A DNA stretch of 64,000 nt, from the sequence record MH791414.1. The stretch is one strand, 5' to 3'. The position numbers and the translations under genes were made by a program. Of this stretch, positions 5,471-26,243 are shown in pieces; the stretch's first letter is position 1; each line of letters begins with the position of its first letter. The notes beneath the pieces were generated by a model, which worked only from the letters and a program-made list of their open reading frames with translations, did no database searches and was not told the origin of the DNA.

Positions 5471-6277
5471 TCAATCTATTCCACCAAAATCTTTAAACGG
5501 GTCTTCTTGGACGGTTGGGTCATTAAATGGATTAAACGGTGCAGTTGCTTTCGGTGTACCTGTTCCGATAATCACGTCAAATTCGTCTACGAAACTATCC
5601 GCTTCATTAGCAACGAAGTCATCCTCTTCATATTCGATGATAGAAGTATCAACCCGTTTATCTAAATTACGAACTTTATCAAGACCACTCTCGTTACCAA
5701 GAATAAAAGATGTTGGATCGAAATCTGGTTGGATTTCTTCTCCGGAATATATGAATTTTTGTGCAGTAATTTTATATTGGGTTTCTTGTCCATTTTGGTA
5801 AAACGGATTATTGGGCTCAACCCAAGTAATTTCAAATATTGCATTATTCATTGGGAAATATATCAAGTCACCTTCTCTAGCTTTTTCTCCATCCCCCTGA
5901 CGGTTAAACAACTCAGGAGAAATAGTAAATTCCGCCTCGTCGTTTACACTCATCCCGAATTTTGAGAAGAATTCTTGTCTTCCTTGATAATCCTCGAAAG
6001 TGTCCAAATACATTGCAACCTTGAAAGCATTATTGAACTTAGATTGCATATCTTCACCAAATAATAAGTCTAGTTTAACCAATTCTCGGCGAATATAAAA
6101 AACTTCAACCCCTTTCATTTGTACTGATTCAGATACCAAATGTCTAGCAAACGCTTGTGAATATCCATAGGCGTAATTATTGACATATGGATTCAAAACA
6201 TGCTTTTTATTTGTGTTGTCTTCGTATCCTGATCCATCTTCTAATCGAGCAAATAAATTTTCGTCAAACATTATCAT
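5471..6277 (-). CDS. 14: Neck protein gp14
   Basis: NLFARLE, LNPYVN, EGDLIYFPMNNAIFEITWVEP and KFIYSGEEI match T4 gp14. Confidence 0.95.
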   Translation of the reverse strand: MIMFDENLFARLEDGSGYEDNTNKKHVLNPYVNNYAYGYSQAFARHLVSESVQMKGVEVFYIRRELVKLDLLFGEDMQSKFNNAFKVAMYLDTFEDYQGRQEFFSKFGMSVNDEAEFTISPELFNRQGDGEKAREGDLIYFPMNNAIFEITWVEPNNPFYQNGQETQYKITAQKFIYSGEEIQPDFDPTSFILGNESGLDKVRNLDKRVDTSIIEYEEDDFVANEADSFVDEFDVIIGTGTPKATAPFNPFNDPTVQEDPFKDFGGID

Positions 6278-7194
6278 TACCCCATAATAATTGGATCTGG
6301 ACCAGACAGGGAAAGTAATTCCAATCTGAGTTTTTCAATTTCTTCTCTTGCTTCTTGGATTAGTCTAACCCCATCAACAGTAACACCCCCCGGAAGTTGC
6401 ATACCTTGATGTTTAGCCATGATATTTCCCCAAACTTCCTTGACTAGGGCGGTGGACATATCTTTAATCCAACGGTTGTTATACACCTTCTGGTCTGGGA
6501 ATTCGTGTCGAGCTTCACCAATCACCCACTGTGGGAGTTTCTTATACGGATTAGCCCATTCCTGTTCATTGGTACTAACAGCTGCACCAGAACCAATAGG
6601 GGTCATGCTACCAATGTTGTTATACCCAAATTCGTCTAGATCGACGAAGTTTTGAATGTAAACTTCGAGAATAAGAATATCCCCTTTTTTAAAGTTTTTC
6701 CCGGCAACCTGAAGCATTCCGGATTTTGTATCAAAATCATATTCTGGAAGTGGGTCTAGCTGGTCTTGAAGCATTTTTTGGTAAGAGCTAAATTGAGCAA
6801 AATAACCAACTGACCCAAAAGTACCAAATGGGCTAGGGCCATGGTAACAAGTACCACCACCAAGACTCATGATGAAGCTAGTAAACCAGTTCAGAGGAAC
6901 ACCACCACCAAGAAGAGTCATATTCCCAACCTGACTACGTAGAATTCTAGTAACCGCAAAAATTGGATATTCGCTTAGATCAATATACCCGGTATTTGCT
7001 TGGTCTTCTGTCATTACGCAAGTAATAAAAGCCCGATTCAATGCGTCATAGTGGTAATCTTTATAAAGCTCCAAAGCCCGACCAATGGAATCATATATCT
7101 GAGTTTCTGTTACTTCAATATTGATAATAGGCGCACCAAGACGACGTAAAATATTATCTTTTAATTCTTTGGGGTTATTACAAGTATTATACAT
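6277..7194 (-). CDS. 13: Neck protein gp13
   Basis: NPKELKDNILRRLGAPIINIE and GMQLPGGVTVDG match T4 gp13. Confidence 0.95.
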   Translation of the reverse strand: MYNTCNNPKELKDNILRRLGAPIINIEVTETQIYDSIGRALELYKDYHYDALNRAFITCVMTEDQANTGYIDLSEYPIFAVTRILRSQVGNMTLLGGGVPLNWFTSFIMSLGGGTCYHGPSPFGTFGSVGYFAQFSSYQKMLQDQLDPLPEYDFDTKSGMLQVAGKNFKKGDILILEVYIQNFVDLDEFGYNNIGSMTPIGSGAAVSTNEQEWANPYKKLPQWVIGEARHEFPDQKVYNNRWIKDMSTALVKEVWGNIMAKHQGMQLPGGVTVDGVRLIQEAREEIEKLRLELLSLSGPDPIIMG

Positions 7195-7218
7195 ATTCGT
7201 TTCCTTATCTTATAAACG

Positions 7219-7225
7219 TATTTAG
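7219..7225 (-). promoter_or_regulatory. Late promoter CTAAATA for gp13
   Basis: TATTTAG on the plus strand, immediately downstream (in minus orientation) of a terminator. Confidence 0.6.
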
Positions 7226-7227
7226 AG

Positions 7228-7263
7228 AAAAGCCCCAACACGAAAAACGAGTCGGGGCTTTTT
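7228..7263. terminator. Rho-independent terminator
   Basis: Stem AAGCCCC...GGGGCTT flanked by A and T runs. Confidence 0.75.
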
Positions 7264-7264
7264 A

Positions 7265-7408
7265 TTAAGTTTCCTTGTTCTTATTATTTTCAATGTCTTC
7301 CTTATTCTTTTCTTGTTTTTTGGTAATGGCTTCCGCCAGCGCCTTTAACAATTGAGACAGGATTTCAAGTCCGATAGTTCTAAAGAACAAGAGTACCGCA
7401 GTTTGCAT
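7265..7408 (-). CDS. Small hypothetical protein (47 aa)
   Basis: Manual translation MQTAVLLFFRTIGLEILSQLLKALAEAITKKQEKNKEDIENNKNKET; AGGGG SD; fills the gap before the terminator. Confidence 0.7.
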   Translation of the reverse strand: MQTAVLLFFRTIGLEILSQLLKALAEAITKKQEKNKEDIENNKNKET

Positions 7409-7422
7409 TATATAACCCCTTT

Positions 7423-8922
7423 CTATACTATTTGTATCCTTGTAGATCGGGTAACAACTTGACCATACGAGTTGCTATACGTTGCGAAATAGAAAATCGT
7501 TGTATCTAGTGTGCTTGTTACAGGTACAGAAAGATTCGGAGTTGACCCAAGGACTACGCCCCTAGAATTTTTCCAAACTACACTAGTGTATCTATCACAA
7601 TTTGTTTCAATTACAACTGTTGACCCTACCGATGCTTCGTATAAAACATTTGGCTGTAATGTTATTTTTGGTGCAACCGTACTCCACCAAGTTATAGAGC
7701 CAACTATATCAAGGGTTAAGAGTCCGTCAGATGACGTCAGTTTGTTGTTTCCATTATTTGAAATGTTAAACAGATAACTTTGGTCATCCATGAAAATTTC
7801 AAACTGTTCTACAGTAATACCGTTGTTATTTAGACCGAAAACGGTATCCACACCGTTACTAAGACTAAGATATGGTTCGTTTATCCGAGTGGATATTTCG
7901 CCGTTTATATATAGCCTTATATTTTGAGCAAATCCATTACTCACATCATACCAAACCGCAACCCCAATACTATTATTTCTTGGTAATGCAGCTTTTAATT
8001 TTTTCTTATGATATACACCATCTGGTGTTCTAACCCAAAAATCATTGTTTACGAGGTCGATACCAATACCAACATTGACCCCACCAACGTCCTTAGACGC
8101 GATTATAAGCTCGGTTGCGTTATTACCCAATACAAGGGCACCGGATATCTTGTGTGATTTGTTAGCGACCATTAGAGAGCCCGCAGAGCGAAACCCTGCA
8201 TTGGTGTTTAAGATCACCGCTTCATTGGTCAAAATTAATGGAGTTGGTTGATAATCTATCACCTTATTTGTTTGGGTTACTTGTGGTGAATCGAAAGAAA
8301 AATCCCCGTTTGTATTATATCTAACACCCACACCAAAGTTGAACTGTATTAAACAATCCACTTTAGCTACAAACGTAGAATATATTTGTGTTCTTGTATC
8401 CCCGATATTTGGGTTTGTTTCAAACGCTTTTGTTATAGTCAGATAATCAGCAACGTTTCCGCCGTTATCCATATAAATATCTGCCAATACTCCACTATGT
8501 ACGGTAGTTTGGTTATTATTTTTGACCATAACACTTGCAGTGTAGACTTTCCCAGCTTTTAGAGATATTCGTGTCTGAAAAAACATTCGACTATTGACAG
8601 TTCGGAATGTATATCCCTTAGTATTTTCACTATCTTGGTTGAAGCTTATTGCAAATGCGTTATTTCCTGTACTAGGAGAATTATTATAAACTGTATAGGT
8701 AGGAGGAACGTTACCAATCTTCGTACCATCAGAATAATAATAAAGGTCCGTTCCGTTCAGCATCCGACTATTCGCTAACAGGTTTTCATCACCAAGATCA
8801 TAGGCTCTATGCCAAGCACCATTAGAAAACACCCAAGGTACAGATTTATGCCAATTATTGTTGCTTTTAACGGATGGGATGGCGTTATGCGCCACCCCAT
8901 TTTTATACACTTTGTTAGACAT
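7423..8922 (-). CDS. Putative virion adhesin: carbohydrate-binding/lectin-like modules and C-terminal Ig-like domain
   Basis: Beta-rich, Asn/Thr-rich; C-terminal PKITLQP...VVW...Y...SNSYGQVVT Ig pattern; lies between wac and gp13. Confidence 0.6.
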   Translation of the reverse strand: MSNKVYKNGVAHNAIPSVKSNNNWHKSVPWVFSNGAWHRAYDLGDENLLANSRMLNGTDLYYYSDGTKIGNVPPTYTVYNNSPSTGNNAFAISFNQDSENTKGYTFRTVNSRMFFQTRISLKAGKVYTASVMVKNNNQTTVHSGVLADIYMDNGGNVADYLTITKAFETNPNIGDTRTQIYSTFVAKVDCLIQFNFGVGVRYNTNGDFSFDSPQVTQTNKVIDYQPTPLILTNEAVILNTNAGFRSAGSLMVANKSHKISGALVLGNNATELIIASKDVGGVNVGIGIDLVNNDFWVRTPDGVYHKKKLKAALPRNNSIGVAVWYDVSNGFAQNIRLYINGEISTRINEPYLSLSNGVDTVFGLNNNGITVEQFEIFMDDQSYLFNISNNGNNKLTSSDGLLTLDIVGSITWWSTVAPKITLQPNVLYEASVGSTVVIETNCDRYTSVVWKNSRGVVLGSTPNLSVPVTSTLDTTIFYFATYSNSYGQVVTRSTRIQIV

Positions 8923-8931
8923 TCGGTTACC

Positions 8932-11900
8932 TTAGTTGATGAACTCAAAGAACACATCACCCTCTTTAGGTGTGGCTGGCGCGTCAGTTGCAAAATCACC
9001 GTAGTAATATGCTCGGACCCACTGTCCACTTTGCCGCACATATTTGTTACCATCGTTAGGTGCTTCAAAACTTTGTGCAGTTAGCACTTTATCGTTATTG
9101 ATAGTCACTTCTGTGGCAGAAATACGAGTTGGTAAGGTAGAATCACCTAAAGCAATATGTTTTTCTGTGTCTGGTTGTTCAATGCTAATAATATTCTTAC
9201 TAACGTTATTTATAGTGGTTGATATACCAAAAGATCTATTAGCACCAACTTCCGCTAGTTTAATAGTCGTTACTTTACCAGCCAATTCAACAAACACTCT
9301 TGAATCACCAATGGTCATCAACTTATCAGCACCAACAGTATCTATTTTCGCAACGTTATATCCACCAATGATAAAATCACTATTCAGATTAACTGAAACG
9401 TCTTTATCCGGGTCGATACCGTCATGAATTAGAGTCCATTGTCCACCTTTACGTGCGTAGAAATTAGCGTCGTTCGGTGCGTCTATTGCATCAGTCCATA
9501 CTCTAGAAGAGTTGACAGTCAAACTACCATAAACGTTAACTGGTTTCGGAGATGTAGCATCACCAATATTGATCCCGGTAGGGGATTTATATTCGATAAG
9601 GACACCGTTTGCTGTCGATATTTTACTATCCAACAGGAAATTAGAAACCGTACCACGGAGAGACAGTTTACCAGTATTAGCACCAATCTTAGTTGTTACT
9701 GTGGCTGCATCAACAGTCATTGCAGTAACTACACCACCGTTTGTTCTAGCTAGAATGGATACGTTTTCTGCGAGTGTAAAATCTCTTTCACCAACTGCTT
9801 GCCAGAACCCAGTACCATCATCATTAACACGAACATAAGGAAGTCCAGATTGTGGGGCATCGTCAATTCCACCAGTCCCACCACCACCACCACCATCTGT
9901 TACAACCATCCATTGGTTATTTTTACGTGCGTAAAAACTACCATCTGCTGGTGCATCCATGCCTTGGTGCCAAACACGATATTTCTCAACACCGGGACCC
10001 TGTACATAGAAATCTTTCGCCAGAATGTTTGTGCAATTGGTATCACCAAATATCAATGAATCGCTGGTGTTTGAAACTACACTGTAGTTAACCCCCATAC
10101 CGACGTTCATCTTGATAGATGTACTCTGATCCATAATCAAGTTATCAATTTTACTAAGGAAAGAAATATTCGCATTAGACGAACCAAATTGAATTTTCCC
10201 ACTAGTCAATTTAATAACATCAGCGCCAGCATATCCAATTTTAGCATCTTGTTCTAAAGTAAAACCTTTTTCTGGGTTGATATCTGTAATATAAGATTTA
10301 TAGTTACCGATATGAAGAACATCATATTCATCAACACCGTTACCAAATTTAAGCGCGTTTACATCCTTACCAATCAGAACAGTGTTTTTATCATTCTGTC
10401 CTAGTTTTACAGTTTGGTCTGTTGCCCCTAATAGGATTTTTCCGTATTTTCTAAGATCGGAGGTTGTATCTAAAGACAAGTTACCGATGATATCACCAAC
10501 GATGCGAATTTTGGTAGCCCCAGTATGACCGAAGGTTGGGATATAATTACCATCAGAACCGGTTGAATACGAAACAAGAGCCGTACCATCGATTGCAGTT
10601 ATTTTTTTACTATCACCAACTACGAAGTTAGTTGTAAATAAATCCCGCCAGAACCAGTTTGTACCATCAAATTCTCTAGACCACACAGCGCCAAGTTGTT
10701 GGCTTGATGGGTTTGATACATAACCAACACCGTTTTTATATTCAGAATACATACCGTCGAACATTTCTTTCGCTGCACGATATACACCTTTTTTACGGAA
10801 CTCTTCATCTGCTGGACTATTAGTACCTTCAACCTTCACATAAAGACCGGTAGATGGGTTTCCTACGGTATTTTGAAGGTCTTCGATAGCAGTACGATAT
10901 TCCACGTTAACAGTATCGGAGATACCAGATACCCGCCCATCCAAATTAGAGAAATGTTCGGCTTCTCGTTGGTCTATTTCTTTGACCTTTCCTTGCAAAC
11001 CATCAAGTGGACTACCACCTAAAACTTGTTCGTTCTTAGAAACGCGAATTCGGAGATCGTTAATTCGTCCCCATGCGGTTGTATCTAAGTTCGAATCGCT
11101 CGCACTACCCAAAGAGCGGTGTAGGTCATCAGCCAAGTTTGAAGTCTGTTTAGACATGTTACCGATATAATCGATATCTTTTTTGGTATGGATTACATAT
11201 TCATAAAGATTGGGAACGGTTACATATGTATCAGTTTCAACGTCAATATATTGGAGAGGGAATTCACCATAACCGGTATGAATAGAAAGTTCCTCAACTA
11301 ACGGAGTATTTATTTCGTCAGCAAACTCCAACTTAGAAAGTCTACCATAAATTGTTCTTGTTGGATCGTAATCATCACCAAGTTCAATTCTAATTTGGTT
11401 TACTTCTTCTCTCAGGGATGCAGGAGTTGAGTCTTCCCACCATTTTTCTAGTGATGTTACTCGAACATCCAGATTAACCCCGGTATTATAGTTTCGTTCA
11501 ACCTGACCTTTAACACCAGAAGCCAAAGTACCGGGGGATGGCATACCATCAATATCAAATCCAGAGTAATTACCCAGCATTTGTTTGATGTGTAAGTCGT
11601 CCGCTCTTAGAGTTCTAAATCGCAATGAAGGATCACCAACACCGATATTATCGGAGATTGACCGGATCTGAGCATCAAGAAGAATATCGGTTTCTTTAAT
11701 GGTCGCAATTTCTTGGTCGTGGGATGTTGCTTTTCCTTCTAATACATCAACCCGCTCATATAGATCCATGCCGTCGCCAGCATTAATTATTTCATCGTGA
11801 ATATTAACCTTATCAATTATTTCATTGACTTTGGTTAACATCTTATCTTGGTTGAGATCAAGAATCTCAACGTTTTCCTCTATTTGAACGGAGGGGCGGT

Positions 11901-12054
11901 TTAAATTACCGCCCTTATCTCCTACAATTAGAGGGTTTGCACCTTCTGGATTCTCACCGTTCTTTATCCAGTCAACTTGTTGTTGACCAGAACCAGCTGG
12001 CGGAACATCCGATTTGAACTTCAGATCATCCAGTGACGGTTTTATAATTCCCAT
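8932..12054 (-). CDS. wac: Fibritin (whisker) Wac, extended, with multiple foldon-like motifs
   Basis: N-terminus LKFKSDVPP...VDWIKNGE...LNRPSVQI matches T4 Wac; coiled coil; foldon-like motifs such as EAPNDGNKYVRQSGQWV. Confidence 0.9.
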   Translation of the reverse strand: MGIIKPSLDDLKFKSDVPPAGSGQQQVDWIKNGENPEGANPLIVGDKGGNLNRPSVQIEENVEILDLNQDKMLTKVNEIIDKVNIHDEIINAGDGMDLYERVDVLEGKATSHDQEIATIKETDILLDAQIRSISDNIGVGDPSLRFRTLRADDLHIKQMLGNYSGFDIDGMPSPGTLASGVKGQVERNYNTGVNLDVRVTSLEKWWEDSTPASLREEVNQIRIELGDDYDPTRTIYGRLSKLEFADEINTPLVEELSIHTGYGEFPLQYIDVETDTYVTVPNLYEYVIHTKKDIDYIGNMSKQTSNLADDLHRSLGSASDSNLDTTAWGRINDLRIRVSKNEQVLGGSPLDGLQGKVKEIDQREAEHFSNLDGRVSGISDTVNVEYRTAIEDLQNTVGNPSTGLYVKVEGTNSPADEEFRKKGVYRAAKEMFDGMYSEYKNGVGYVSNPSSQQLGAVWSREFDGTNWFWRDLFTTNFVVGDSKKITAIDGTALVSYSTGSDGNYIPTFGHTGATKIRIVGDIIGNLSLDTTSDLRKYGKILLGATDQTVKLGQNDKNTVLIGKDVNALKFGNGVDEYDVLHIGNYKSYITDINPEKGFTLEQDAKIGYAGADVIKLTSGKIQFGSSNANISFLSKIDNLIMDQSTSIKMNVGMGVNYSVVSNTSDSLIFGDTNCTNILAKDFYVQGPGVEKYRVWHQGMDAPADGSFYARKNNQWMVVTDGGGGGGTGGIDDAPQSGLPYVRVNDDGTGFWQAVGERDFTLAENVSILARTNGGVVTAMTVDAATVTTKIGANTGKLSLRGTVSNFLLDSKISTANGVLIEYKSPTGINIGDATSPKPVNVYGSLTVNSSRVWTDAIDAPNDANFYARKGGQWTLIHDGIDPDKDVSVNLNSDFIIGGYNVAKIDTVGADKLMTIGDSRVFVELAGKVTTIKLAEVGANRSFGISTTINNVSKNIISIEQPDTEKHIALGDSTLPTRISATEVTINNDKVLTAQSFEAPNDGNKYVRQSGQWVRAYYYGDFATDAPATPKEGDVFFEFIN

Positions 12055-12089
12055 TACCTAGTACCCCAATTGTGAAAGTTATATATCTG

Positions 12090-12096
12090 TATTTAG
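12090..12096 (-). promoter_or_regulatory. Late promoter CTAAATA for wac (overlaps gp12 stop)
   Basis: TATTTAG at 12090-12096. Confidence 0.55.
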
Positions 12097-13451
12097 GTTG
12101 TTGTATATACGTCTTTGATCCCCCAGACTCTCCACATACGGCAGTTTTCACCGATAGTTTGGAAGAACCGACCGTTATTCGGGTCAAATCTACCCAACCA
12201 CCAAATAGAGTCAGCATGAACAACCCAATAACCATAGGTGTAATAGTAATCTTGAGCGTTTATGATTTGTTGTCTGGTCATTTGATAGGAAGTCATCTCT
12301 CTACCAGAATCCCCAGTCGCTTCAAATATCAAACTATCAAAGTCCCACCATGGTTGACTTAACCAGAAATTCCCGGTAGGCAAACCACCTTGACCACTTG
12401 CATCAAATAGAATGGTTCTTTCTGAAGAAGTGAAATTGACTCTAGACCCTTTACTTGTCTTGGTTGCAATTACGCTATTCAGACTATTGAAAAGACCCTC
12501 AACAAAATCTCTACGTGTAACAGCGTCTGGATTTGAAACCTGTGATGAAATATACATAGACGGAGCAGAGATCGGTCCAGTGAATGCACCACCAGTTTTA
12601 GGCATGAGTTGCGCGGCACCATGGGCAGTTAATGCATGTGAAAATAATCCATCAACTGGAACGTTTGACAATGCCACAATCCCGTATTGTTGGGTACTTC
12701 CGATAGGGAGGGTCGCCGGACTCAAAGCAACGTCAGATAACGCACGTGCGTTTGCTTCTGCTTGCGTAGCCATCCGGGTTGTACCAACTCTGGTGGTGGT
12801 TGCGCGAGTTTCTATAAAGCCTTTTGGGCTAACAGCAACCCCATTATGCAGACCAGCATTGACTACCGGACTCGGTGATATTTTAACTACCCCCGAAGTG
12901 GTTTCAGTCGCACCAGCTGGGTTAGTGGTAATTGCGAATGTATCAATCATCGCTTTAACTACTGCTGGGGTTGTTGCTGTGGTGCTATCTAAACCAAGAA
13001 CACCAACAGCAACAGTAGATAGTTTTAAAGTCCCCGATTTGGTTGTGGACCCCCCAGCTTTATTTCGGATAATATCCCAAATACCGCTAGTGTGAATCCC
13101 GATAGACGTACTTGCGTTAGCCTCATTACGTTCAGAACTATTAGCAAAACGAACAAGACCTTTAACTGTCTCTGACGCATCAGGACGAACCCATTTTGCT
13201 TGCAAAGTTTTAGGGGTAACAATAGCATCCGGAACAAGACCGTCTAAAACTTCTTGTTCAGTCGCAATCCGCAATATTCCCATTTTTGTTTCGGTGGCTT
13301 TCATATCCTCATAATTACCAATTGCATGAGGTTGAATTAAATTAGCCATTTTCTGGACATCAGTTGTATCAGGCGGGAAATTGGTGGTTGATGGGTCCAG
13401 CTCCACATCAACCGCTTTTGAACTGATATGTTGTTCGGTATTATTTATCAT
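12093..13451 (-). CDS. 12: Short tail fibre gp12
   Basis: NNTEQHISS...DPSTTNFPP...ATEQEVLDG...VTPKTL matches the T4 gp12 N-terminus; repeats follow; C-terminus divergent. Confidence 0.9.
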   Translation of the reverse strand: MINNTEQHISSKAVDVELDPSTTNFPPDTTDVQKMANLIQPHAIGNYEDMKATETKMGILRIATEQEVLDGLVPDAIVTPKTLQAKWVRPDASETVKGLVRFANSSERNEANASTSIGIHTSGIWDIIRNKAGGSTTKSGTLKLSTVAVGVLGLDSTTATTPAVVKAMIDTFAITTNPAGATETTSGVVKISPSPVVNAGLHNGVAVSPKGFIETRATTTRVGTTRMATQAEANARALSDVALSPATLPIGSTQQYGIVALSNVPVDGLFSHALTAHGAAQLMPKTGGAFTGPISAPSMYISSQVSNPDAVTRRDFVEGLFNSLNSVIATKTSKGSRVNFTSSERTILFDASGQGGLPTGNFWLSQPWWDFDSLIFEATGDSGREMTSYQMTRQQIINAQDYYYTYGYWVVHADSIWWLGRFDPNNGRFFQTIGENCRMWRVWGIKDVYTTT

Positions 13452-13455
13452 TTTT

Positions 13456-14427
13456 TTAACCTATCTTTTTCCAATAATAAAGAGTAACCATGCTACTATC
13501 AGCTAATACCTTATCCTCAGTAAGGAATCGTTCCCAATATCCATTACCATAGGAAGCAGGCGAACCAACAACCCAAGCCATATTAATTCCATTTTTAGCC
13601 CAAGGTTGGGGGGTGTGGTCTCTCATATCTTTATATGTAAAAGAAATGGAATCAACACCTACGGTAGACAGATCTTTTATATATAGACCTTGGTCTTTGA
13701 AGGATTGTAATACCGCATAAACTGCATCTCTAAAACTTGTCTCTGAAGTACCATCTGCAACTGTTAATCTCGTTCCAAATATATCAAAGGTTGTTGGAGA
13801 CCCAACCATATCAGAAGCAACCGCACCACTAAAAGTAAGCAAATCCGATTGAGGGACCCCGGAAGGGTCTCTATTATCTAAATTGATAATTACAGATTGA
13901 TTATTCATCCTACCGACGTTTGCAGCATCCATAATGGCATTCTGGATTGTCGGGAATGGTGTATGTCTAGATGCGTCCTGTAATGTGGCTGAACCGATAT
14001 TACCGGTCGTTGCAAGACCGTCCAAAGAAGTCTCTTGGATAAACTCAAGATCATTAGCTCGGCGAGATCGAATTTTAGAACCTTCTCTAGCTCTTGAAGG
14101 GTCAACGCTGGTACGTCCATCGAAAGGGGTTGCCATTGCAACCCCAGATGTCACATTAGATAATTCAGCAGAAGTATTTGAATCAACTTCTGTAATTTTA
14201 ACTCGAAAGTATTTATTAGAATACAACGGGTTAGTTGGTGGCATTTTCAATTTATCAGAAGCCGCTGACGGATCTATTACATCTGCCCAAGAAGTACCAT
14301 TAGAAGAAGAACTCCAAGAGTATTTTAATTCGGCATTTGGTAGTGAAGTCGTTGCAGCTATTGTAAATGTGTATGGGCTACCAGCATAATATGTTATATT
14401 CTGAGGTTGTTGAAAAATAGTAATCAT
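13456..14427 (-). CDS. 11: Baseplate wedge gp11 with N-terminal Ig-like extension
   Basis: C-terminal ~210 aa match T4 gp11 (PSGVPQSDLLTFSGAV, YGNGYW, LYYWKKIG); first ~100 aa Ig-like (QQPQN...YSW...YFRVKIT). Confidence 0.88.
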   Translation of the reverse strand: MITIFQQPQNITYYAGSPYTFTIAATTSLPNAELKYSWSSSSNGTSWADVIDPSAASDKLKMPPTNPLYSNKYFRVKITEVDSNTSAELSNVTSGVAMATPFDGRTSVDPSRAREGSKIRSRRANDLEFIQETSLDGLATTGNIGSATLQDASRHTPFPTIQNAIMDAANVGRMNNQSVIINLDNRDPSGVPQSDLLTFSGAVASDMVGSPTTFDIFGTRLTVADGTSETSFRDAVYAVLQSFKDQGLYIKDLSTVGVDSISFTYKDMRDHTPQPWAKNGINMAWVVGSPASYGNGYWERFLTEDKVLADSSMVTLYYWKKIG

Positions 14428-14428
14428 T

Positions 14429-16570
14429 TTATTCCACTCTTAGCCATCTATGGGCGGTTGCTGTCGGTTGAACAATCCCAATAGGGTTAACTGGGGCATT
14501 TGGTCTGGTATATACAAAATCTTCTTTGTATTTTTTGAAGCCCGGACCTTGTTCGTCAGGGTCATATTGACACCCACCAATTAGAACATCACCATTAGGA
14601 TCTGCAATAAGTGCCTTTTCGGTACTTGTTGTTCCCGGTGTGTTTTCTGGTAGGATCACAACCTCATTTTCACCAACAAATCCACCAGAGCTGTGTCTAG
14701 GTTGTCCGTTTACATCAAGATCTTGATGGTTCAAACCATATATTGGGTCATTTGGGTTTTCACTATTCCAACCAGCAATTGTCATCCCTTCTGCCCAACG
14801 AACCCAAGTACCCATTCCCATATAAGTCGCGGGGTTGTTGGGGTTGTGTGCGTTTTCATAAACAGTCCCAACCGGATGGAAAATATCAAACATCATTTGA
14901 ATGGTGTTTACGCTAACACCCATTTGATCATTCGGGTCTGCTTGTACTGTTTTTTGGCTTGGGTTATACGGGTCTGAATATTTGATCTTCCCGCTAATGT
15001 TTAGCTGATTGCTTGCGACATATTTACTATCCGTTTCTTGAATGATGTCTTCCAGATCCAAGAGTGAACCAATGTCATTGTTAAACCAACGAATTGTAAT
15101 AATGTCACCATGGTCCAACGGTTCGTTAATTACAAACTCTCTCATTCTTCCATTAGCATCTTCTACCGGTCCAAAGTCTGCACCAGAGGAAACCCAAACA
15201 CCACCCTGAACAATACAAGATTCCTCGGTGATCGCGTCTGCACCGTCACAAACAAAGAACGGAATATCAGCTGAACCAGCTTTCAAAAGCTGTCTACCGT
15301 TAATAAGGATCTCTAAAGTTTTTGGGTTGAACGATTCACTTTCTTGGAAACCAAACTCACTAATACTAAAGCGATATTTAGCGGCAAGGTCACCAACAAA
15401 TCTACGCCCTAACTCGGTTTCGTAATCCACCGGAGCTAATGAACTAGAATATACCCGTATTGAACCAGTTTCATAAGAGCTACGGAAGGTAGCAAACCCA
15501 TCCAAGAATGTTTCTACAACGATAACATCACCTAGTTCGCAAGGTTTGGTTAGTCTGATGGTATAACCATCTAGCGCAGCAATACTACTCATACCAACGT
15601 TTAAAGTAACTTGAGCAGTCCCTTTAAATGCAGCCAAAATATCAGGCGTTGCACTATTTGAAACATATTCCTTAGTTATATTATCCAGTTCAAATATATA
15701 AGAGCTTCCACCAAAAGCAACTGTCATATACTGAACATTCAATGGGACTTTATCCAAATCGAATTTAATATAGGACAATCCGGTACTTTCTCTCGAATAA
15801 AACCTGATAATATCGGTATTTTCCACTTTTCCAACGATGGAACCACCAGTGTTTTTAATGAATCCGTAAGACATACCACCCAAAGAAGCTGGGGTAACCT
15901 TAATTTGGACTGGAGGAGCAACACTAGCAGAAACAACAGAACCGTAATTCGATTCGGAACTTAATTTGCTACCATAATACAGAATGTTGCCGCGCTTATA
16001 TACGTTGATTGCTTGTGTGTTATAACCAGACGGGAAAATATCTACAAAATCGGTCTGACCTTCAGTTGCAATAAATTCCCTCTTAATAACACTAGACATA
16101 TCACCAGATTTGATTTCACCAACATACTTACTAGCAACATAATCCCAGTTCCCCGGAGAGCAATAAACTAATTCAACGTCCATATTGTTTCTGTCAAGAC
16201 GATGAACACCCGGAGACCCTTTTATTGTGTTGGTCCCGCTTGGGATCAAAGTAACTGGGTTAGCTCCCCAAGTTCCAATAACATCCCGAAGACGAATCAC
16301 CTTTCCATAATCCGATGGTGAACCAAGAGGGAGATTAACGGTTATTTTCCCGGTTGTGGTGTTAATGACCCACGCTTGACCCATAATACAAACTAAATTA
16401 TGTGTATGGTCAGAATAAGGTTTCCATGCACCGGCAGCATGGGGGATATTACCATCCCCAAGGTTGTAATAAAGTTCGTCAAAGTTGTCGTTTATCTTCG
16501 AACCACCTTTGCGAAGGTAATCACCGGTTCCGTCATCAACACGATTACCAATTATAATTTTCTGTTTCAT
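14429..16570 (-). CDS. 10: Baseplate wedge/tail pin gp10
   Basis: MKQKIIIGNRVDDGTGDYLRKGGSKINDNFDELY and C-terminal VQPTATAHRWLRVE match T4 gp10. Confidence 0.95.
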   Translation of the reverse strand: MKQKIIIGNRVDDGTGDYLRKGGSKINDNFDELYYNLGDGNIPHAAGAWKPYSDHTHNLVCIMGQAWVINTTTGKITVNLPLGSPSDYGKVIRLRDVIGTWGANPVTLIPSGTNTIKGSPGVHRLDRNNMDVELVYCSPGNWDYVASKYVGEIKSGDMSSVIKREFIATEGQTDFVDIFPSGYNTQAINVYKRGNILYYGSKLSSESNYGSVVSASVAPPVQIKVTPASLGGMSYGFIKNTGGSIVGKVENTDIIRFYSRESTGLSYIKFDLDKVPLNVQYMTVAFGGSSYIFELDNITKEYVSNSATPDILAAFKGTAQVTLNVGMSSIAALDGYTIRLTKPCELGDVIVVETFLDGFATFRSSYETGSIRVYSSSLAPVDYETELGRRFVGDLAAKYRFSISEFGFQESESFNPKTLEILINGRQLLKAGSADIPFFVCDGADAITEESCIVQGGVWVSSGADFGPVEDANGRMREFVINEPLDHGDIITIRWFNNDIGSLLDLEDIIQETDSKYVASNQLNISGKIKYSDPYNPSQKTVQADPNDQMGVSVNTIQMMFDIFHPVGTVYENAHNPNNPATYMGMGTWVRWAEGMTIAGWNSENPNDPIYGLNHQDLDVNGQPRHSSGGFVGENEVVILPENTPGTTSTEKALIADPNGDVLIGGCQYDPDEQGPGFKKYKEDFVYTRPNAPVNPIGIVQPTATAHRWLRVE

Positions 16571-17498: not shown

Positions 17499-17532
17499 TG
17501 TTATAGATCCTTTTGTTTATAGATTACTTCAG

Positions 17533-17539
17533 TATTTAG
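17533..17539 (-). promoter_or_regulatory. Late promoter CTAAATA for gp9
   Basis: TATTTAG about 35 nt upstream of the gp9 start. Confidence 0.65.
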
Positions 17540-26215: not shown

Positions 26216-26236
26216 ATAAAAATCCTCCATATGGAG

Positions 26237-26243
26237 TATTTAG
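26237..26243 (-). promoter_or_regulatory. Late promoter CTAAATA for gp5.1-5.4-25-6
   Basis: TATTTAG on the plus strand. Confidence 0.6.

Follow-up and report, generated by a model that had tools for sequence, protein, structure and literature searches.

We analyzed the gene for the neck-whisker protein fibritin (wac, protein Wac) in a window of 64,000 nucleotides (nt) from sequence record MH791414.1. The gene (positions 8932-12054 of this 64-kb window, on the minus strand, as are all parts of wac described below) shows 100% identity over its length to that of Aeromonas phage Aswh_1, a member of the genus Ishigurovirus within the Straboviridae, and encodes a protein of 1040 amino acids (aa), 2.1 times the length of the Wac of phage T4 (487 aa). 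The distal half of Aswh_1 Wac contains four homologues of the foldon, and three of them close beta-rich modules that are homologous to one another. Taken as a whole, the data make it likely that Aswh_1 has a double-length fibritin of the type found in phage Aeh1, with a beta-structured distal shaft kept in register by serial foldon clamps, one flexible joint, and a helper or tip protein encoded by the adjacent gene.

Foldon-like motifs in the fibritin of phage Aswh_1

The 1040-aa protein was identified as a fibritin by its similarity to known fibritins and by gene order. Residues 6-424 of T4 Wac align to aa 8-429 of Aswh_1 Wac (E 1e-24, BLASTP). In the PHROG search, phrog_1056 matches aa 4-434 (E 1.5e-68) and phrog_9687, annotated as 'fibritin neck whisker', covers the protein end to end (positions 1-1059, E 0). 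The gene also sits at the position of wac in T4, with gp12 on one side and gp13 and gp14 on the other, and GenBank labels its product 'fibritin neck whiskers protein'. These comparisons bear out the original prediction, made from the letters of the window, that the protein is the Wac whisker, and by homology they place the open reading frame (ORF) at 8932-12054 in the Aeh1-type class. The size contrast drawn in that prediction is also correct, as T4 fibritin has about half this length and a single foldon at its C-terminus. From the BLASTP and phrog_1056 matches, the canonical part of the protein (aa 1-434, 10753-12054) is expected to hold the collar-binding N-terminus and the segmented coiled-coil shaft.

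We scanned all six frames of the window with a regular expression for the foldon and retrieved exactly four matches, all of them within the wac ORF; there were none elsewhere in the 64 kb and none in 50 shuffles of the window. Each motif was then scored by local alignment to the T4 foldon against shuffles (z) and by profile-profile comparison (hhalign) against the T4 and JS98-type foldons. F1 (DAPADGSFYARKNNQW; aa 700-715, 9910-9957), F3 (DAPNDANFYARKGGQW; aa 858-873, 9436-9483) and F4 (EAPNDGNKYVRQSGQW; aa 997-1012, 9019-9066) reached z values of 10.4, 11.7 and 11.9 and hhalign values of 96.4% (E 1.3e-9), 95.7% (E 8.7e-9) and 96.3% (E 1.7e-9), respectively. F2 (DAPQSGLPYVRVNDDGTGFW; aa 732-751, 9802-9861), which comes right after a glycine-rich hinge and has a hairpin loop four residues longer, scored z 3.5 and an hhalign probability of 92.9% (E 3.7e-7). 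The four clear foldon-like motifs that had been predicted were thus recovered by all of these measures, which support the view that F1-F4 are true homologues of the T4 foldon.

When the protein was compared by BLASTP to whole T4 Wac, the T4 foldon (residues 462-478) was matched separately by F4 (E 2e-4), F3 (E 6e-4) and F1 (E 2e-3). These three copies retain the signature [DE]AP.DG..Y[AV]R..G.W and, with the extended [DE]AP.DG lead-in included, agree with the foldon at 8 or 9 positions. They fit at the signature positions E5, A6, P7, D9, G10, Y13, R15 and W20, F2 fits more weakly, and a fifth candidate (F0, see below) fails. Sequence and profile searches of the PDB matched only chains that bear a foldon. 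The best match (8wro, E 1.3e-5) is an engineered tandem-foldon spike and spans F1, the glycine hinge and F2. In the spike construct 8wro/8wtj, two T4 foldons are joined by a GGSGGS-type linker, the same tandem layout as in the natural F1-hinge-F2 segment. Scanned alone, the C-terminal 567 aa of Wac reach 23.8 bits on the Pfam family Fibritin_C (PF07921, profile length 93; cut-off 21), and 10 out of 10 relatives match as well. F4 aligns to positions 72-92 of this profile and is followed by a tail of 28 aa.

With the whole protein as query, the sole match to Fibritin_C lies closer to the N-terminus, at aa 389-473 (profile positions 7-91 of 93, E 3.6e-11). It ends at a fifth, weaker motif that the original prediction had placed at about 10645-10730 (~aa 442-470). 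As a significant foldon this motif was rejected (z 0.2; hhalign probability 0.4%); what holds of the claim is its location where the Fibritin_C match ends. One of its residues, W469, is invariant across the aligned family, and the region is more foldon-like in Aeh1 and in Citrobacter phage Ci1. F0 (aa 444-473, 10636-10725) is probably what is left, in degenerate form, of the foldon that originally closed fibritin at its C-terminus.

Homologous modules, their conservation and their spread

The prediction had described beta-rich modules of 130-150 aa that end in RVWH or RVWT. Such modules are indeed present, with a size of ~120-140 aa, and the ending holds for two of them: module 1 (aa 592-715, 9910-10281) closes with RVWH (aa 693-696) and F1, module 2 (aa 752-873, 9436-9801) with RVWT (aa 851-854) and F3, whereas the last one, module 3 (aa 874-1012, 9019-9435), closes with KVLT and F4. 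They are preceded by a beta-rich stretch that ends in VLHIGNYKSYI (module 0; aa 474-591, 10282-10635). The single Gly-rich hinge that had been noticed is found in the translation as DGGGGGGTGG (aa 719-728, 9871-9900), between F1 and F2. The protein terminates with a conserved tail, VRAYYYGDFATDAPATPKEGDVFFEFIN (aa 1013-1040, 8935-9018).

We compared the modules to each other by hhalign, using profiles sliced from the family alignment. The three units that include the foldon motif (U1, aa 592-720; U2, aa 745-878; U3, aa 879-1018) are mutually homologous at 98.3-99.4% (U1-U2 99.4%, U1-U3 98.6%). The homology is still detectable between the module bodies after removal of the foldon and of the VW segment (B1-B3 95%, B2-B3 76%, B1-B2 67%). 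The match between B0 (aa 474-575) and B3 is weak (hhalign probability 31%, E 5e-4), and aa 474-575 are possibly a fourth, degenerate copy. These results uphold the claim of a segmented distal half, in which homologous beta-rich modules are punctuated by foldon homologues. In a tree of 21 units from different phages, the units sort by position and not by phage (support for U3 98/97), with 3 changes of position label compared to 10.5 when labels are shuffled. Since the units group by position rather than by phage, the triplication of the module is, on the evidence of this tree, older than the split of these Aeromonas, Citrobacter and Vibrio phage lineages.

To describe conservation, we aligned Wac with relatives ranging from 72% to 27% identity, which comprised phage 65, Aeh1, Citrobacter phage Ci1, Vibrio phage vB_VmeM-32, and loci from IMG/VR and metagenomes. 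In the distal half, invariant columns concentrate in the motifs and in the last 28 residues. They include W695, D700, P702, D704, Y708, R710 and W715 in the zone of F1, P734 and W751 in F2, W853, A859, P860 and W873 in module 2 and F3, and P999, D1001, Y1005, R1007, G1010 and W1012 in F4. The core residues D, P, D, Y, R and W are invariant even in relatives of 27-34% identity, including the Citrobacter and Vibrio phages. Among the retained positions are those that we take to form the inter-chain salt bridge of the T4 foldon (the acid at E5, and R15) and its core tryptophan (W20). In the C-terminal tail, 18 out of 28 positions (including YYY, FAT, EGD, FFEF and the terminal N) are invariant in a 10-sequence alignment, compared to 95 out of 567 overall. 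The hinge stretch is Gly-rich in all homologues, and G726 and G728 are invariant.

Two relatives depart from this layout. The wac gene of vB_VmeM-32 (L003:3956-7324, 1123 aa) carries ~70 extra aa immediately behind F1 and more inserted sequence around F2, in place of the short Gly hinge, which indicates that the joint between F1 and F2 tolerates extra domains. In Aeromonas phage Ah1 (MG250483.1) the long wac is annotated as wac_1 and wac_2 and matches in two pieces; the gene may truly be split, or the two pieces may reflect a frameshift or a sequencing error.

Overall, 36 phage records cover at least 80% of the Aswh_1 Wac query (tblastn), and a metagenome scan added three Aeh1-like loci. The module-plus-foldon unit was detected in 41 records of the phage collection, from phages of Aeromonas (34), Cronobacter (4), Vibrio (1), Citrobacter (1) and Erythrobacter (1). 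All but one of them (40 out of 41) are wac genes, and the Erythrobacter phage record is one weak match in a tail fiber. Within the Aswh_1 genome, the module profile has no match besides wac. A word-based protein search with the C-terminal region retrieved only close relatives and P0007, an otherwise unrelated, phage-like protein of 1139 aa from an ENA metagenome, and the ESM Atlas returned only generic tail-fiber clusters (0.87-0.88), under the useful score. The foldon-like motif also matches PHROG families of tail fibers or tails (phrog_25379, phrog_14458, phrog_15437 and phrog_26654). There are at least five foldon-like motifs in P0007, of which four lie close to the N-terminus and several have Gly-rich linkers beside or between them (such as GGGGGGIEEAPEDGTLYARSDASW); the protein matches Fibritin_C in three stretches (E 1.7e-12). 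The serial use of foldons is therefore not limited to fibritin.

Proposed architecture of the whisker and alternative explanations

Double-length fibritins of the Aeh1 type are an already described and annotated class, to which the Aswh_1 gene belongs. The fibritin of Aeh1 is twice as long as that of T4, and its C-terminal domain was called 'alien', with weak homology to tail fibers (Letarov and Krisch 2013, PMC3797505). Expressed alone it is insoluble, and it forms a compact oligomer, resistant to sodium dodecyl sulfate, only when gp218 is co-expressed and the temperature does not exceed 25 C; the same authors suggest that fibritins of this type may serve to recognize the host (PMC3797505). 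Aswh_1 Wac resembles Aeh1 Wac in length (1040 and 1035 aa), is similar to it along the full length (31.5% identity, E 4e-136, coverage 100%, tblastn) and shares the same four foldon-like motifs at matching positions. The loci are alike too, with wac between gp12 and gp13 and a gp218-type gene downstream, which in Aswh_1 is an ORF of 499 aa. On the other hand, the two proteins are only 31% identical and come from different genera (Cinqassovirus and Ishigurovirus), and the dependence of folding on the downstream protein is reported for Aeh1 only. Internal foldon repeats in the Aeh1-type fibritin are not mentioned in PMC3797505. We found no mention of four foldons capping homologous beta modules in the literature covered, which did not include Letarov et al. 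2005, and this detail may be unreported.

Compared to T4 fibritin (PDB 1AA0, 1RFO), the N-terminal 430 residues are homologous, and F1, F3 and F4 preserve the foldon signature with the equivalents of E5, R15 and W20. However, T4 Wac has one terminal foldon that caps a coiled coil, whereas the Aswh_1 copies are internal or precede the 28-aa tail, cap beta modules and lack the STFL helix. Fibritins of the JS98 type, such as the 799-aa Wac of phage IME341, likewise carry multiple foldons, including an internal one, and are reported to trimerize by themselves (PMC3797505). They differ in having two copies separated by an alpha-helical coiled coil, which in IME341 is made of heptad-like repeats; Aswh_1 has four copies, spaced by homologous beta-rich modules and by a Gly hinge, and its Aeh1 homologue needs a helper. 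A further, proposed likeness is to phage tail fibers such as T4 gp37 with gp57A and gp38, which are long trimeric beta fibers in need of a separately encoded protein from an adjacent gene. Unlike the tail fibers, Wac would be anchored by the N-terminus of fibritin at the neck and not at the baseplate, and its module bodies have no detectable homology to solved fibers.

From these comparisons we propose the following architecture. The first ~440 residues would be those of a normal fibritin, in which a segmented alpha-helical coiled coil continues from the N-terminus that binds the collar, and the decayed original foldon would come next. The remaining ~570 residues would form a beta-structured distal shaft that goes back to an ancient triplication, in tandem, of a module of ~120-140 aa, and may include a degenerate fourth copy. 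Modules 1-3 each close with (R/K)V(W/L)(H/T) and a foldon motif of the form given above, and one extra copy, F2, stands just past the conserved Gly hinge. Each copy may fold into a three-hairpin 'propeller' like that of the T4 foldon, hold the three chains in register like a clamp at each of these points and start the folding of the adjoining beta module, and the hinge between F1 and F2 may act as a flexible joint. The conserved 28-residue tail and the co-transcribed, lectin-like downstream protein would complete the unit; this protein, whose Aeh1 counterpart is reportedly required for fibritin to be soluble and trimeric, probably assists in folding or sits at the tip, or does both. While the homology of the motifs and of the modules can be read directly from the alignments, we infer from it that the motifs act as nodes of trimerization.

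Predicted structure adds weak support. In a monomer model of aa 474-1040 (AlphaFold2, AF2), the chain is all-beta and a beta-hairpin is found at 4 out of 4 motifs, where the local pLDDT (40-59) is the highest in the chain. The model as a whole is poor (pLDDT 37.9, pTM 0.15), and this is the first of several observations that weigh against the proposed architecture, although poor monomer models are usual for one chain of a trimeric fiber. The Pfam scan, which the C-terminal 567 aa pass, is not passed by the single motifs; these stay below threshold (E 0.0045-0.08), always at profile positions 72-92, which correspond to the foldon. The hairpin loop of F2 is longer than that of the T4 foldon. After the tryptophan, F1, F2 and F3 continue as MVVTDGGG, QAVGERDF and TLIHDGID, and so lack the 3-10 helix (STFL) that closes the T4 foldon at its C-terminus; here the chain must run on. 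Since F1-F3 are internal and without this helix, they are foldon-like modules and not canonical terminal foldons. The module bodies have no relative in the PDB by sequence or profile search. Finally, as Aeh1 fibritin is insoluble alone, the motifs are insufficient to fold the whole protein.

The motifs might be homologous to the foldon and yet serve mainly as repeated binding sites, for the long tail fibers or for the downstream protein, rather than hold the chains together. In favor of this, conservation within the extension is highest in the motifs and in the C-terminal tail, Aeh1 fibritin depends on its downstream protein, and T4 fibritin contacts the long tail fiber through its C-terminal part (PMC3797505). 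However, foldon-like motifs are also found in unrelated fiber proteins that have different partners. Moreover, the conserved acidic residue, Arg and Trp (E5, R15 and W20) are presumably contacts of the foldon trimer and not a new surface, and we consider this explanation unlikely. Even less probable is convergence, that is, a short beta-hairpin with Y.R...W that recurs in trimeric beta fibers by chance or structural constraint. It is suggested by the small size of the motif (16-20 residues), by single copies that do not reach the Pfam threshold and by F0, which illustrates that a weak resemblance can be meaningless. Nevertheless, the agreement of three copies at so many positions, lead-in included, the profile-profile E values (1e-9 to 4e-7) and the lack of matches in the shuffles or elsewhere in the window leave very little room for it.

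A different question is where the distal half came from. It may have been captured from a tail-fiber-type gene with foldon-like hairpins of its own, in which case the motifs would not be duplicates of the fibritin foldon; such an origin is compatible with their function as nodes. This scenario fits the weak tail-fiber homology of the 'alien' Aeh1 domain (Letarov and Krisch), the matches of the motif to several tail-fiber or tail PHROGs and to P0007, the weak match in the Erythrobacter phage tail fiber, and the persistence of the decayed F0 at the old C-terminus. It is at odds with the almost exclusive presence of the module-plus-foldon unit in wac genes, and no donor fiber gene was found; in the Aswh_1 genome, only wac matches the profile. 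We regard capture as a credible scenario, if not the favored one.

The preferred reading of the motifs as serial clamps of a three-chain shaft may extend beyond fibritin. The four copies found here, the five or more in P0007 with their Gly linkers and the copies in tail-fiber PHROGs suggest that the foldon could be a portable, internal 'registration clamp' that is reused serially in beta fibers, each copy trimerizing by itself, and that the whisker and its lectin-like partner could be a second set of fibers that bind the host surface. We put this forward tentatively, as an idea that is rather doubtful at present. The foldon is among the most used trimerization tags in vaccine and protein engineering, and is mostly regarded as a lone cap at the C-terminus of T4 fibritin. 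If the copies described here trimerize on their own, they would provide a natural set of sequence-divergent foldon tags. Four divergent foldons between beta modules would also show how phages hold long three-chain fibers in register, and would lend detail to the view that the Aeh1-type whisker is a tail-fiber-like, possibly host-sensing appendage.

The downstream gene and the surroundings of wac

The 499-aa ORF (7423-8922, minus strand) starts 9 nt after the wac stop codon. It is a homologue of Aeh1 ORF207w/gp218 (36% identity, E 7e-100 to ORF207w), the reported fibritin-specific folding partner, and the annotation of vB_VmeM-32 equates the ORF207w-type gene with Aeh1p218. A gp218-type gene follows every long wac examined. 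The AF2 model of the 499-aa protein has a pLDDT of 59, with 70-93 in the C-terminal half, and shows three N-terminal beta-hairpins, a jelly-roll or CBM-like domain, a LamG/ConA-like lectin domain and a C-terminal Ig-like domain. Foldseek matched this model to laminin-G, neurexin LNS, pentraxin, galectin, CBM and Ig folds. By its model the protein looks more like an adhesin than like a classical chaperone, and is consistent with an adhesin bound to the tip. A resemblance between its N-terminus (NGAWHRAYDLGD) and F4 with the tail of Wac (SGQWVRAYYYGD) was not significant (hhalign 14%).

Downstream of the partner gene lies an ORF of 47 aa (7265-7408, minus strand), annotated as hypothetical ASwh1_232, and then an intrinsic terminator (7225-7262, minus strand), which ends the unit formed by wac, the 499-aa ORF and the small ORF. 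The terminator, which a scan with a consensus terminator missed, was found by RNA folding: a U-rich tract comes after a hairpin of -21.6 kcal/mol (z -7.1). On the opposite side, the octamer CTAAATAC (12089-12096, minus strand) lies 35 nt upstream of the wac start and is a candidate for a late-promoter box of T4 type by its enrichment and position. There are 9 copies of it in the window compared to 2.7 expected; those on the minus strand include 12089-12096, 7218-7225, 17532-17539 and 26236-26243, and copies are found just upstream of the late structural genes wac, gp13 and a gp9-like gene. The octamer may be the Aswh_1 variant of the T4 box.

By Pfam and PHROG matches, with which the GenBank annotation agrees, the genes around wac are ordered gp10 (14429-16570), gp11 (13456-14427, minus strand), gp12, the short tail fiber (12093-13451), wac, the 499-aa ORF, and the neck genes gp13 (6277-7194) and gp14 (5471-6277). 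The gp11 homologue has an N-terminal extension of ~110 aa that matches phrog_25852 (virion structural protein, E 9e-5), and its gp11 domain proper begins at about aa 111.

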